From contig CBFDEM010000052.1 in NCBI GenBank assembly GCA_965603825.1, forward strand, positions 575,579 through 639,578: DNA of 64,000 bases, given 5' to 3'. Each line of letters begins with the position of its first letter. The stretch's first letter is position 1. This DNA comes from Blepharisma stoltei ATCC 30299. Taxonomy: Eukaryota; Protista; Ciliophora. The translations under genes and the position numbers were made by a program. Below, piece after piece: positions 56,490 to 64,000 of this stretch. A model generated the notes under the pieces. It ran no database searches, was not told where the DNA came from, and saw only the letters and a program-made list of their open reading frames with translations.

Positions 56490-57300
56490 ATGACAATTCC
56501 ACAAAGAGCACTTAAATTCAGCGAAAATTCTTGAGAGAATCTATGCAAAATTACCCAATATAAAGAAAGAGTTACTACTTACGATAGATTAAGCGAATTT
56601 TATCAGAATAAAGAATTACCCACTTATTTCCAAGTTTATAACATTAGCACGAAAAAGGAAATATATGATGTCAGCTTATTGCCAGTCAGTTTAGATGATT
56701 CAACAAGTTTTGTATAGCATCTCTGCATATAATTCTTATGAGAGAGAAATTAGCTAATTGGGGGTTAGCTTGTGCTCCTAATGCTGCAAACTAATTTTCA
56801 GTTGGCCCTTCTGCAAAGACCAGTTAAAGAGTTTCGTACCATTTTTAGTTCGCAACCAATCTCCCTGCTTATAGAAAGCAAATGTGAGGAAATGCAATAC
56901 AGATTTCAAATAAAGAATTGCTTTTTGCAGGGCCGAAAGCATATTCTAATTGAGGTGCAGCTGGAATAATTGACTTTACAAGATATGAGATTGCAATGTT
57001 TTTCCCCTTCCCATTTGAAGATGATTTCTTTGGTTTTTGGGTAGCTTATTTTGAGCAAAATGTTTATGTTTTTGGTCTCTCTAAAATTAATAGAAACCAA
57101 AATTCGGTAGCTAAGAAGCTAAGTTTAACAAAAAGTCGATGAAAGGCGCTGGCTGCTCCCCCAGCTAATGTAGATGAATGCTCATGCGTCTTTTATAAGC
57201 ACTCAATTCTGATTGCAGGAGGCAAAAAGAACAAAATATATCAATATAATATTGATCTGGATAGCTATTTAGAGCGTGACCCCTCAATGCTCTATAATAT
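56490..57300 (+). pseudogene. Decayed kelch-like gene fragments
   Basis: ATG 56490 frame stops at TAG 56715. A later fragment NVYVFG..SRW..CSCVFYKHSILIAGG resembles the propeller of the upstream gene. Confidence 0.55.
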
Positions 57301-57530
57301 ACACTTGATCAGGATTGCAATTCAGTTTTGAGTATGCTATACGTCTCCAATTCAAATAACTTCCAATTTCGCTTTCATAGATTGATCCCTTGTCCCATTC
57401 AATCAAATATAGTCTCTCTGCATTTATCAGGATCTTTCTTTTCTTATCTTCAAATTTATAAGGAATTATTGAGAAAGAGTCAATATCAATTGAGTATAAC
57501 AAAAGATTTCTGCTATCATATCAGAAATCA
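57284..57530 (-). pseudogene. Inverted fragment of another kelch-like family member
   Basis: LYSIDIDSF..RKILINAERLYLIE..GSIYES..W parallels LSYDIRQNCF..RKEIFSYENRVYICE..GSTYQS..W at 56.1-56.3 kb; no start codon. Confidence 0.6.
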
Positions 57531-57846
57531 AAATATTTCTATTAAATATTATACTACTGAAATAACAATCAGCTTGTGGCATAGGAATTAATTGAATTCA
57601 CCGATTTTGATCCAAATCAAATCTAAGAGATAGAGTTAAATTAAGCCAAAGGGATTGATCATTGTTATTGGTCCTGTCAGACATGAATCCAGCAATATCA
57701 GCATTTATGCTCCCTAAATCAGTAATTCCTATCTTTAAGGCTTATACCCGCGATCTCTTCTAGTAGGTTATCAAAAAACTTGTCTTCCCGCAGATTCAAC
57801 TGGACCATAAGCATCCACCACCAAGTTTTCCAGTTCTATTTGTATG

Positions 57847-58340
57847 TACCTAGGTTGCGCCAAAGAAAACAATTGTGCTGGATGCTCTGTAAAAAGCACC
57901 CAATGCGATTTACATGAGGCTGAATACTTCCTTAATGAAGATAGTGCCACTTCAACACCTTGCCTTTGTAAGATTTTATTTAGCTTGCACCGACTCCTGC
58001 ACAAGTTGCTAGCCAGGTCCCGAATGCTATAAATGCGCTAAAACAATAACTCAAGCAGGAACTACTTGCAGAGTCGATTCTGTTGGATACCAGATCAGCC
58101 TCGATGATACAAATATCGTGCTTGACTTTGCTCATCCACTTTTGACTAGGCTTTCGAAAAGTTCAATTAAAGCTACTTCAAACTCAAATGCAGATATCTC
58201 AACAAGTGAATGGACTTTAAATGGCTGCGTAGCAGGCTTGAAGCAGTGCAAAATTTATGCCCCTAATATTCAAGAAAGCGATCTCCCAATTGGAATTCAG
58301 GTCGAATTCGCTCAAGTCTAAGCCAAGTCTCTTTAAGGGT
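57847..58340 (+). pseudogene. Truncated duplicate of the 3' part of the terminal Cys-rich gene
   Basis: Aligns by eye to 61481-61973; 16-nt intron 57968-57983; AAG>TAG nonsense change at 58010. Confidence 0.88.
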
Positions 58341-58494
58341 AAATAGCCTTTTCTCAAAAATCAATAAATCTCTTTATTTCAATTAATTTATGGCAAGATC
58401 ATAATATAAGCATTATAGAAATTTTTTCAAAAGCAATATTTACATTAATTACTCATAAAGATCAATATTAAGATTAGCTGGCAACTCGAAACAT

Positions 58495-58790
58495 ACTGTA
58501 TTTTTTACTTTAGGCTGCTTTAATCCTCTTATAGAAATTGCCCGAGGATGGCGCAAAATAGCGCCATCCTCGGGCAATTTCTATATATTGTTTCTTGTCT
58601 GTTAACCTTCGTTAAGCTCTGCGCTTTATGTGATGAAGGCAATTTCCTCTACAATGATGAAGCAGCCACAGCATCTGCATATATAAATTTATTTAGCCTT
58701 TATTGGTTCCTACAGTTCTTGGAGCAAGGCCTCGTGCTTTTATATGCTTCTGCAGTCGCTCAAGACGGAAGAAATCTGTAAAGTAAATAT
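58495..58790 (+). pseudogene. Third, more diverged remnant of the Cys-rich gene family, interrupted by a palindrome
   Basis: Intron-like GTATTTTTTACTTTAG, then LCALCDEGNFLYNDEAATASA versus QCDLCPTGYFLNKDSATSTSC. Confidence 0.6.
58530..58585. mobile_element. TA-bounded perfect palindrome (25-bp arms, 6-nt loop); IES/MITE-like insertion
   Basis: TATAGAAATTGCCCGAGGATGGCGC-AAAATA-GCGCCATCCTCGGGCAATTTCTATA; absent from the paralogs. The palindrome is certain, its origin is inferred. Confidence 0.65.
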
Positions 58791-60551
58791 GAAAACTGGT
58801 TCTCAAATTATCTGGCTATTAAGATAAACTTCATTCTGGCTGTTCAGACGACACCTTTATAAGCAAATTGATGTGACGATCTTGGTAAAATGAGCTTCCA
58901 GTGACTCGTAACTAGAATTCAATCAAGTCTAACTTTAGGAGCAGCTAATCCTCTTATTAAATTCATTATAGCACTGCAGCTGTGTATTAAACAAGCTTCG
59001 CTAAAAATTGGTTGATTAATTATTTTTAGTTATAATTCCCAAGAAAATTTTTATAAAATTTAAATCGCTTCTTATATCTCCTATTATAAGTATTTGAAAA
59101 TTTATTTATTCAAATTTTTAATCGAATGCTTGATTTTTAACAAATTAAGTAGTTAAATTAATAATTTTTAATTTAATTCTTCATTCATTTTCGAGTCTTA
59201 AAACTCTATTTGGATTTAAGTGATTCTTTAATTTTATCACAATATCCTTTGTACATGTAATAAAGGAATTTTATAATCGCTATTTGAGTGATATCAATTT
59301 TATTTGGCTTCGCTTTAGATCATGCATTGGCTTTTGCATCCAAAAATTTAATTTTTTTATTATATGATCATCCTTGTCTATCTACAAGCTCGGTTCTTTG
59401 CATTTTGGCTGGAGGGTTGCAGCCATATATTCTATATAGCAACTTCTTAATTTAGGTCCTGAAACTATGGAGCTAATCAATTTTTTGTGCTGAATGATGG
59501 ATTGCCTTATTCCCATCTGGGACCATCAGAATTTTCTTTTCAGAAATAGGATGGGGATTTCTTACGGAAGCATTTAGAATTGAAAGGAGTATTGCACAAA
59601 ATAACTAAAATCAAAATGACTTAAAGCTTTTCAATAATGAAAAGCTAGGCTTAGAGCAATTGCTTTTTAGTAGTCACTCAAAGTTATTTGATTTCTTTCG
59701 AGTCTTTCTTGCTTCAGCCTTAAAAACAAAAAAGTCAAAATATTTCGCTTACCTGATAACAATATTTTCTTAACATAGGAAAAATATGCATGCAGCATTA
59801 GAATTTCTATTAATTTCATATTAGAACGGCCAATATAAACTAAATGGCAAGGCAAACTAGCTGAGAGCTCTTTTTTGATTTTTTGTCTTCAATTAGGAAA
59901 TGCAACATTTTCTCCATAAACTCACTATATTTTTACTCAAAATAATTTATCGAGTGGAAAATAGCTGATTTCAAATAACAGTCCTTCTTTTTATTCCCAT
60001 CATAGCTATATCATGCCTGCTAAATGTGGATGTCTAGGAGCTTCTCAAAGTGCTGGATATGTTGTAGATTTTCAAGTTTTAATTTCTGCATCACTTTCTG
60101 AAATCGCTGTTAGCATTTGATTTTACTTCTAGTTATAATAGAATAACAATGAAGAGAACTGTCCTAAGAAAACTGACTTAAACTTAATTTATGGACAGAT
60201 ATTAGGAATTAAGTTGGAAGAACATAAGTTTGAGCTCATTCAAATTAAGGAAATTAAATTTGAGATAAGGTACTAGCGATTTTGAATATCCCAAATCCTT
60301 TACCACTATGTTTAAACAAAAAATTAGTTTTAAATATAGGCCAACTTGGTAATTTTAACGATAGGCAATATTACAGATATTTAAAGTGGGATTTTAAGCA
60401 AGCCTAAGGCTTCATTATAGTAATTTTAAATTTTATTCTGGCCATCCAATTCATAAATTTGAAAAACAATCAAAGCATTCTTGATAAAATTTACAATTAA
60501 AATCGCTTAGCATCCATTTTTAAAGTGAAATGAATTTGTTTATAAATAAAA

Positions 60552-61954
60552 ATGGTTTATTCAAAGCCACTAATTATTCTCGTCCTCGTCGTCCTCTTAT
60601 CATTTGTCCAAGGATGATCAGTAGGTGATTGGATTCTTAGAAAACCAACAGGAGTAACTCTAAGCAATGGCATTATCAATCAGTTAAATTCCGGTACCCC
60701 TGCTCTATCTCCAGATGAGTCGGTTGATATCAACCAATATCTTAGCTGCTTTTCATTAAGCAAGAACGGTGAAAGCTGGAGTTTAACAGCAGATGCATCA
60801 AACTTAATCAGTGGTTCAGAATACGCATTTGGATTTTGGGTAAACTTTGAATCAACAATTAGCCCAAAAGTTTTTCAATTTGGAGCTAACACTGGCCCAC
60901 GTTTTATTGTCTCATCAACTGAGAATGGCACCTTAAAAGTTTCCTTCTTTTCAAGCACTACAACAAATGATCCAGCTAATGATTTGTCCATAACCGTCCC
61001 TTTAAGTAATTTATATATAGACAAGTGGTTCTTTATTGTGTTTCACTTTACTAATGTCTCAGGCACTCCTACTTTGAAGATTATCTTGCCTGGCCAACCC
61101 GTAATTTCCAAAACTTCAGGGAGCTCAAACGTTGCTTTTGTTATACCTAGCAAGGTATTTTTTTTGGAGGTGGAATTAAGGGTAAAATTTATAGGGCTAT
61201 GCTTACAAAGAGTGCCACCATAAATCAAGACTATAATAAAATAACAGTAAATGATGGCATATATAGGTTTGATATAGCTGTGCCTTGTACTCCTGGAGCT
61301 TGCATTGATAGTATATGCTATTATGGGAGCAATTGTATATCATTACTGGAATATTGCACCACTTGCACTCAAAACTCATGCACTAAGTGCGATCCTGATT
61401 CAGCTAGAGCTGAGGGAAATTTTTGCCAAACCTGCAAGGATACCACTACTAATGAACTTAAAAATTATCACTGTAATTTCTACTTAGGTTGTGCCAAAGC
61501 CAACAATTGTGCTGAATGCTCGACAAAAAGCACTCAATGTGATTTATGTCCGACTGGATACTTCCTTAATAAAGATAGTGCGACTTCAACGTCTTGCATT
61601 TGTAAGTGTTATTTAGCTTGTACCGACTCCTGCACAAGTTGCAAGCCAGGTCCCAATTGCTATAAATGTGCTAATACAATAACTCAAACAGGAACTATTT
61701 GCATAGTCGATTCTGTTGGCTACCAGCTCAGCCTCGATGGTACGAATATCGTGCTTGACTTTGCTCATCCACTTTTGGCTGGACTGTCGAAAAGTTCAAT
61801 TAAAGCTACTTCAAACTCAAATACAGATATCTCAACAAGCGAATGGACTTTAACTGGCTGCGTAGCAGGCTTGAAACAGTGCAAAATTTATGCTCCTAAT
61901 ATTCAAGAAGGCGATCTCCCAATTGGAATTCAGGTCGAATTCACTCAAATCTAA
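60552..61954 (+). CDS. Secreted protein: signal peptide, beta-rich LamG/ConA-like region, Cys-rich CxxC repeats; frameshift in T8 at 61158-61165; probable introns 61473-61487 and 61602-61616
   Basis: MVYSKPLIILVLVVLLSFVQG signal; AFGFWV, KWFFIVF; CxxC repeats; TAA 14 nt before the telomeric register. Confidence 0.72.
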
Positions 61955-61968
61955 GCCAAGCCTCTTTA

Positions 61969-64000
61969 AGGGTGTTAGGGTGTTAGGGTGTTAGGGTGTT
62001 AGGGTGTTAGGGTGTTAGGGTGTTAGGGTGTTAGGGTGTTAGGGTTAGGGTGTTAGGGTGTTAGGGTGTTAGGGTGTTAGGGTGTTAGGGTGTTAGGGTG
62101 TTAGGGTGTTAGGGTGTTAGGGTGTTAGGGTGTTAGGGTGTTAGGGTGTTAGGGTGTTAGGGTGTTAGGGTGTTAGGGTGTTAGGGTGTTAGGGTGTTAG
62201 GGTGTTAGGGTGTTAGGGTGTTAGGGTGTTAGGGTGTTAGGGTGTTAGGGTGTAGGTGTTAGGGTGTTAGGGTGTTAGGGTGTTAGGGTGTTAGGGTGTT
62301 AGGGTGTTAGGGTGTTAGGTGTTAGGGTGTTAGGGTGTTAGGGTGTTAGGGTGTTAGGGTGTTAGGGTGTTAGGGTGTTAGGGTGTTAGGGTGTTAGGGT
62401 GTTAGGGTGTTAGGGTGTTAGGGTGTTAGGGTGTTAGGGTGTTAGGGTGTTAGGGTGTTAGGGTGTTAGGGTGTTAGGGTGTTAGGGTGTTAGGGTGTTA
62501 GGGTGTTAGGGTGTTAGGGTGTTAGGGTGTTAGGGTGTTAGGGTGTTAGGGTGTTAGGGTGTTAGGGTGTTAGGGTGTTAGGGTGTTAGGGTGTTAGGGT
62601 GTTAGGGTGTTAGGGTGTTAGGGTGTTAGGGTGTTAGGGTGTTAGGGTGTTAGGGTGTTAGGGTGTTAGGGTGTTAGGGTGTTAGGGTGTTAGGGTGTTA
62701 GGGTGTTAGGGTGTTAGGGTGTTAGGGTGTTAGGGTGTTAGGGTGTTAGGGTGTTAGGGTGTTAGGGTGTTAGGGTGTTAGGGTGTTAGGGTGTTAGGGT
62801 GTTAGGGTGTTAGGGTGTTAGGGTGTTAGGGTGTTAGGGTGTTAGGGTGTTAGGGTGTTAGGGTGTTAGGGTGTTAGGGTGTTAGGGTGTTAGGGTGTTA
62901 GGGTGTTAGGGTGTTAGGGTGTTAGGGTGTTAGGGTGTTAGGGTGTTAGGGTGTTAGGGTGTTAGGGTGTTAGGGTGTTAGGGTGTTAGGGTGTTAGGGT
63001 GTTAGGGTGTTAGGGTGTTAGGGTGTTAGGGTGTTAGGGTGTTAGGGTGTTAGGGTGTTAGGGTGTTAGGGTGTTAGGGTGTTAGGGTGTTAGGGTGTTA
63101 GGGTGTTAGGGTGTTAGGGTGTTAGGGTGTTAGGGTGTTAGGGTGTTAGGGTGTTAGGGTGTTAGGGTGTTAGGGTGTTAGGGTGTTAGGGTGTTAGGGT
63201 GTTAGGGTGTTAGGGTGTTAGGGTGTTAGGGTGTTAGGGTGTTAGGGTGTTAGGGTGTTAGGGTGTTAGGGTGTTAGGGTGTTAGGGTGTTAGGGTGTTA
63301 GGGTGTTAGGGTGTTAGGGTGTTAGGGTGTTAGGGTGTTAGGGTGTTAGGGTGTTAGGGTGTTAGGGTGTTAGGGTGTTAGGGTGTTAGGGTGTTAGGGT
63401 GTTAGGGTGTTAGGGTGTTAGGGTGTTAGGGTGTTAGGGTGTTAGGGTGTTAGGGTGTTAGGGTGTTAGGGTGTTAGGGTGTTAGGGTGTTAGGGTGTTA
63501 GGGTGTTAGGGTGTTAGGGTGTTAGGGTGTTAGGGTGTTAGGGTGTTAGGGTGTTAGGGTGTTAGGGTGTTAGGGTGTTAGGGTGTTAGGGTGTTAGGGT
63601 GTTAGGGTGTTAGGGTGTTAGGGTGTTAGGGTGTTAGGGTGTTAGGGTGTTAGGGTGTTAGGGTGTTAGGGTGTTAGGGTGTTAGGGTGTTAGGGTGTTA
63701 GGGTGTTAGGGTGTTAGGGTGTTAGGGTGTTAGGGTGTTAGGGTGTTAGGGTGTTAGGGTGTTAGGGTGTTAGGGTGTTAGGGTGTTTGGGTGTTAGGGT
63801 GTTAGGGTGTTAGGGTGTTAGGGTGTTAGGGTGTTAGGGTGTTAGGGTGTTGGGTGTTAGGGTGTTAGGGTGTTAGGGTGTTAGGGTGTTAGGGTGTTAG
63901 GGTGTTAGGGTGTTAGGGTGTTAGGGTGTTAGGGTTAGGGTGTTAGGGTGTTAGGGTGTTAGGGTGTTAGGGTGTTAGGGTGTTAGGGTGTTAGGGTGTT
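61969..64000 (+). repeat. Telomeric repeat (GGGTGTTA)n = CCCTAACA, about 250 units, running off the window
   Basis: Direct observation; G-rich strand runs 5'->3' toward the end; a few variant units. Confidence 0.99.

Follow-up and report, generated by a model that had tools for sequence, protein, structure and literature searches.

Tc1/mariner-type MITEs (Stowaway-like) are non-coding, uniform in size and able to form a hairpin, and they have terminal inverted repeats (TIRs), a TA duplication and an AT-rich target bias. The element described here has all of these properties, although it is much shorter, with a body of 52 bp and an interior of 6 bp. In another ciliate, the solo palindromic TIR IESs of Paramecium Thon/Sardine are Tc1/mariner-related and, like the element, are palindromic and dispersed at TA sites without a transposase (PMC3464196). 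However, these are hundreds of bp long, are excised and have a known parent element, whereas the element is 54 bp and somatic.

Blepharisma itself has non-autonomous sequences with inverted repeats and TA-containing ends that are like the element and in the same genome, namely the MITIES (BogoMITE) and the palindromic IES families rnd-1_family-87 together with rnd-1_family-160 (PMC9942856). The latter two families are palindromic as the element is, the TATAG..TT end is similar, and the element is probably also germline-rich. Yet BogoMITE and the two families are germline-limited and 153-389 bp long, while the element is 54 bp with at least 44 copies in the MAC, and the duplication of BogoMITE is TAA/TTA rather than TA. 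No sequence link was found between the element and the known families tested, and its sequence is absent from the supplement text of PMC9942856.

The MAC genome of Blepharisma stoltei ATCC 30299 has been published as 41 Mb in 64 contigs with telomeres of CCCTAACA; it is virtually homozygous, has introns of 15-16 nt and reads UGA as Trp (bioRxiv 10.1101/2021.12.14.471607). The smallest published IES length class is 64-66 bp and there is no 54 bp class (PMC9942856 Table S1), although the peak calling required at least 100 IESs, such that a small 54 bp class could escape. According to the same authors the excisase cannot act on very short loops, and step 3b of their model (PMC9942856, Fig. 6) has MITEs that the excisase cannot cut being purged by selection; Seah et al. 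2023 described excised ones only. No somatic family of 54-56 bp palindromes is described in the two genome papers on Blepharisma or in the supplement text in PNAS (figure images and RepeatModeler library aside), and the family reported here is apparently unpublished. The 56-mer at the locus under study is probably a young non-autonomous DNA transposon, a mini-MITE, belonging to a germline-rich family and unexcised because it lies under the IES size floor.

A TA-bounded palindrome and its dispersed family

The window is the whole 64,000 nt stretch of DNA that was analysed, the features of which are collected in Table 1. Positions 58530-58585 form a perfect palindrome with arms of 25 nt each (58530-58554 and 58561-58585) that are 100% complementary, with a 6 nt AAAATA spacer between them and TATA at both ends of the palindrome. 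This is as the earlier note had described from the letters alone, except that the arms, there called GC-rich, are so in their inner part and not in their outer part. The DNA fold of the hairpin is -31.8 kcal/mol (z = -10.3), which was equalled by 0 of 200 shuffles, and the chance expectation for such arms in the whole genome is about 6e-6. The body consists of two 23 bp TIRs and the 6 bp spacer and brings a net gain of 54 bp, including the TA duplication.

Table 1. Features of the element, its host and the adjoining end of the window
Feature	Position	Strand	Evidence or remark
Left TA, target-site duplication	58530..58531	.	Empty paralogues L055/L058; one TA and exact 54 nt gaps at L035, L032, L022
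Left arm, 23 bp terminal inverted repeat	58532..58554	+	Arm pairing, family alignment
Asymmetric spacer AAAATA, 6 nt, marker of subfamily A1	58555..58560	.	Family comparison
Right arm, 23 bp terminal inverted repeat	58561..58583	-	Arm pairing, family alignment
Right TA, target-site duplication	58584..58585	.	BLAST to L058 ends at 58533, restarts at 58584
Host: last exon (Cys-rich) of the terminal gene family, in a decayed copy with frameshifts	58514..58780	+	Alignment 97.5 vs shuffles 36.8 ± 6.1
16 nt GT..AG intron remnant of host pseudogene	58498..58513	+	Aligns with the terminal gene's 15 nt intron, 61473-61487
3' exon of the terminal gene, as a 90% identical copy with frameshifts	57847..58337	+	Directly upstream of host block
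Terminal Cys-rich gene adjoining telomere, reference paralogue	60546..61956	+	Used for host alignment
Telomeric repeat, 8 nt unit, permutation of CCCTAACA	61970..64000	+	Window end

A pattern and BLAST search was conducted over the genome assembly (41.46 Mb, 64 contigs), which we infer to be the somatic (MAC) genome of the near-homozygous B. stoltei ATCC 30299. At least 44 copies were identified, a count to be taken as a lower bound, and these are 53 to 56 nt long including the flanking TAs (38 of 56 nt, five of 55 nt and one of 53 nt). Their flanks are mutually unrelated, bar one pair of paralogues (L032 and L022). The hairpin at 58530-58585 is identical to the copies at C11:131k and C49:65k, giving three identical A1 copies. 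Nine copies of the B-type are identical to one another, and there are three further identical pairs in which the partners share arm mismatches. Because arm mismatches recur at unrelated sites in this way, the element multiplies as a whole unit and is not regenerated from one arm.

The most variable sites between copies are positions 5-6 of the 56-mer, in the left arm. Spacers in the other subfamilies are AAGATA and GGAATG, plus a 5 nt ATTGA type. When set against asymmetric arm variants, the spacer is found in both orientations (L027 vs L029/L038 and L030 vs L024/L043), as expected when the centre of a palindrome inverts.

The family has the TIRs, the shortness, the lack of coding capacity, the target duplication seen through empty sites and the many uniform copies at non-homologous sites that define a MITE, and its TA duplication is that of Tc1/mariner elements. 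The mini-MITE reading proposed earlier is supported by this dispersion at a fixed length, with sharp ends, a TA duplication and identical copies at unrelated sites. A fold-back or assembly artefact is rejected on the 44 loci, the identical copies and the contigs that reach the element ends in three DNA runs. The prospect that the arm might prove unique genome-wide, which had been raised against the element, did not hold, there being at least 44 copies.

No longer elements with the same TIR were found in the MAC assembly with interiors of 31-60 nt. Among the matches listed from this assembly there are no unpaired arms, every one being paired at a short spacer, and no autonomous partner sharing the TIR. 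The arms have no resemblance to the published BstTc1 TIR, and the exact core pattern was not found in metagenome and viral contigs. A candidate at C53:50k (L053) is a chance match and was left out of the family. An unrelated 53 nt near-palindrome, also bounded by TATA, is present at G000:C13:302952-303004 as a single MAC copy at 3 or fewer mismatches; it may belong, as a stray copy, to a different family of germline hairpins.

Host pseudogene, target sites and placement relative to genes

With the element taken out, 58480-58780 aligns to the intron and last exon of the terminal gene with a score of 97.5, the shuffles reaching 36.8 ± 6.1 and at most 61.5. This bears out the earlier view of the host as a decayed paralogue of that gene. 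The homology is visible in the DNA alignment only, tblastn between the terminal exon and the host having given no match. The last exon of the terminal gene has no Pfam match. Closer paralogues of the host are present on contig C64 (L055 and L058, 75-81% identical), both of which carry stops and frameshifts and are without the element at exactly the host's TA. Because these empty copies are frameshifted and have stops too, the host exon would most likely have been dead before the element arrived, and the copy at 58530-58585 would ride along neutrally in an exon that had already lost its function.

Aligned with the host locus, the empty L055 and L058 show a 55 nt gap that is read as 54 nt plus a 1 nt indel. 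Clean gaps of 54 nt with a single TA left are seen against the empty paralogues at L035, L032 and L022. Because these exact gaps leave one TA, the duplication is TA, the body is 52 bp and the TIRs are 23 bp; a TATA (4 bp) target duplication is ruled out by the same gaps. The insertion of about 55 nt that had been noted before is thus indeed an insertion, L055 and L058 being empty at the same TA, with its net length adjusted to 54 nt. A heterozygous allele is unlikely in a strain that is virtually homozygous. The target flanks have a weak symmetric bias, with T at +1, +6, +8 and +9 from the TA, for which the nominal p values of about 0.001-0.008 are borderline after correction for 56 tests.

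The earlier note had left the perfect arms to either youth or selection. Recent copying explains them, because identical copies exist elsewhere, and selection on the 58530-58585 copy is rejected, since the empty paralogues are frameshifted as well. The perfect arms therefore probably reflect youth rather than selection, in a host exon that was probably already broken. It is most improbable that the family as such is a functional host element under selection, acting as a small-RNA hairpin or as a cis-acting DNA site. The hairpin is very stable and 10 arm changes are mirrored, but 41 are unmirrored, and the element is missing at paralogous sites and sits in ORFs and pseudogenes. An Rfam search returned generic hairpin matches, the best of 30.9 bits against a gathering score of 245. 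With no Rfam family at the gathering score and almost no contig depth in X8, the one probable RNA run, the suggestion of a hairpin small-RNA source found no support.

At 58584-59060, contigs from the ATCC DNA and one RNA run show copies of this block that are about 97-98% identical and are not found in the 64-contig assembly. The alignment of one X8 contig begins at the right TA (58584) and leaves its first 16 letters unaligned, a length that equals the stretch between exon start and TA; this contig may derive from an element-free copy of the host block.

The surroundings are subtelomeric in character. The 90% identical upstream copy of the terminal gene (57847-58340 vs 61481-61970) reveals the sequence past the telomere addition point, and the telomere sets in at a short AGGGT match. 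Positions 57300-57640 are a high-copy dispersed repeat, often subtelomeric, with dozens of 84-95% matches and very high depth in all DNA runs. Positions 57299-57641 and 59169-59900 are 95% identical to G000:C52:4915-8157 (L065), which lies at the other end of this contig, and on this identity both contig ends share a subtelomeric duplication.

Nine of the 44 sites have an open frame that reaches at least 50 codons to either side, compared with 30% of the neighbouring TAs, a modest gap that introns blur. The flanks of the family are AT-richer than random TA flanks (GC 0.278 vs 0.306, p = 0.001). True IESs of Blepharisma lie within genes in about 70% of cases (PMC9942856). The scarcity in coding frames and the AT-rich flanks fit selection against insertions that escape removal.

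Five of the nine copies in long ORFs are free of stops and in frame, adding 18 codons: L035 (C22:103k), L051 (C61:81k), L032, L021 and L022. The other four preserve the frame and bear a stop: L038 (C36:113k), L010 (C48:475k), L047 (C54:758k) and L045 (C50:398k), the ORF hit by L045 being integrase-core-like. Rickettsia palindromic elements (RPE) are short palindromic mobile DNA that can lie in-frame in ORFs, adding peptide. The five copies are predicted to add their 18 codons likewise, but the RPE are bacterial and longer, the in-frame copies of the element are few and no homology is claimed.

Two of the in-frame copies, L032 (G000:C4:109076-109131) and L022 (G000:C4:84194-84249), belong to different subfamilies and occupy the same homologous Tyr-codon TA. 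Their hosts are tandem paralogues, about 70% identical and 25 kb apart. This TA is present in three of ten paralogues, of which L032 and L022 are filled and L068 is empty. The double hit points to an insertion hotspot, for which the weak TA preference offers no explanation.

Probable germline-side abundance, and evidence on excision

Contigs of four sequencing runs, assembled contigs rather than raw reads, were aligned on 57300-60300. Judging by the study layout, X7 would be the MIC-enriched gradient fraction, X3 the ATCC total DNA, X12 strain HT-IV and X8 RNA; the germline enrichment of X7 rests on a layout in which four samples equal four sucrose fractions. In the element bin the summed contig depth is 74,337 in X7, 4,456 in X3, 3,923 in X12 and 21 in X8, with flank depths of about 270, about 182, about 26 and 0-67, respectively. 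The X7/X3 depth ratio is 16.7 in the element bin, 3.7 or less (median 1.7) in the other 29 bins and 2.8 for another high-copy repeat in the region. Relative to other DNA, the depth of the element is 6-11x higher in the probably germline-enriched X7 than in total DNA, depth not being the same as copy number. This is a strong hint of a germline excess of the element, of roughly hundreds to a thousand copies, with the same caution that summed contig depth is not copy number. At least 93 X7 contigs run from the exact ends of the element into unrelated flanks, and X12, the probable second strain, likewise has the family in abundance.

Precise excision would leave a joint that skips 58532-58585 and keeps one TA, a check that the earlier note had proposed. 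There is none among the stronger joints listed from the two ATCC DNA runs, in contigs that drop rare variants, such that excision at a low level may occur. Two joints starting at 58533 were rejected as excision products; their letters differ, and they stem from empty paralogues that have diverged. The element is TA-bounded as IESs are, but it is present at no fewer than 44 MAC loci and, at 54 bp, is shorter than the 64-66 bp class. Because somatic absence and IES length are both lacking, it is not classed as an IES or MITIES. The listed joints and the length do not show a retained IES in the narrow meaning of the term, one that is cut out as a rule and kept at times; the alternative wording of the earlier note, an element too short for excision, fits both.

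It is unlikely that these are nevertheless true MITIES, with most 54 bp copies excised precisely and the approximately 44 MAC copies forming an inefficiently excised remainder near the lower size limit, some of them only in part cut out of a given MAC. The germline-side excess of sequence, the many exact-end junctions in X7 and the four copies that bring a stop into otherwise long ORFs are in keeping with such excision. So are the TATAG..TT ends, which agree with the consensus published for the ends of the IES classes of ~153 and ~174 bp (PMC9942856). However, Table S1 of that paper is without a 54 bp IES class, the joints listed from the two ATCC DNA runs include none that skips the element, and the rarity in coding frames is unlike that of IESs.

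Thirteen X7 contigs reach the hairpin at 58536 after a flank that is GC-rich (median 51 nt, consensus agreement 0.55), and the weak consensus of that flank is unmatched in the MAC assembly at 3 or fewer mismatches. This hints that the flank belongs to a longer germline relative or parent of the element, or to a palindromic IES. The 54-mer could on these grounds be a somatic remnant, its two ends joined once an internal IES had been removed, or a detached palindromic module of a longer germline TIR or palindromic IES. IES families that are palindromic are known at ~153 and ~228 bp (PMC9942856), the Paramecium Thon/Sardine solo palindromic TIR is a precedent (PMC3464196) and the A-type spacers have a TA inside. 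This origin is nonetheless improbable: the B- and C-type spacers have no TA, the empty sites show a clean 54 bp unit, and many X7 contigs exit at the exact ends of the 56-mer, such that the short form appears to be present in X7 DNA. A longer relative could also be the ancestor, leaving the MITE reading unchanged.

Under somatic capture, germline hairpins set free during development would have entered the developing MAC at the cuts made by the excisase (IES junctions) and then been fixed by assortment over long vegetative culture, the loci being empty in the germline. The double hit of L032 and L022, with 3 of 10 paralogues having that TA, has a rough chance of about 5e-4 (an estimate), and the T at +6 to +9 in the target flanks is loosely IES-end-like. 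A transposase hotspot is a simpler account of the double hit, however, and the family is abundant in the probable second strain as well. No empty-site joint was seen among those listed for X7, which is a weak test, and altogether capture is very improbable.

Origin of the somatic copies and its meaning

Under the preferred reading, that of a mini-MITE, a putative TA-targeting DDE transposase (Tc1/mariner/IS630 type) would mobilise the element in trans in the germline. Copies inside DNA destined for elimination would cost nothing and would pile up, producing the germline excess. Copies in MAC-destined DNA would mostly stay because 54 bp is below the smallest IES class, the PiggyBac-derived excisase presumably handling nothing under this class of about 65 bp; the length floor is a correlation. 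The retained copies would enter the MAC and undergo selection, and the survivors would be found mainly in AT-rich non-coding DNA, pseudogenes and redundant paralogues.

A bolder proposal, which we hold only tentatively and think unlikely, is that a germline-abundant 54 bp hairpin (10^2-10^3 copies) lies just under the excisase size floor and favours sites that the excisase also cuts. If this were true, the MAC copies, the repeated codon hits and the 18-codon additions would be a natural readout of the floor, and the MAC copies might even be germline hairpins that were excised and then inserted anew in the soma, at IES junctions.

On its own, the locus at 58530-58585 would be one neutral copy in a pseudogene. 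The in-frame copies elsewhere in the genome could be a small source of peptide insertions. As a somatic 54 bp TA-bounded family with IES-like ends, the element is a candidate for the non-excisable MITEs predicted by Seah et al. 2023, and its 44 natural loci lend themselves to testing how short an IES can be in a heterotrich.
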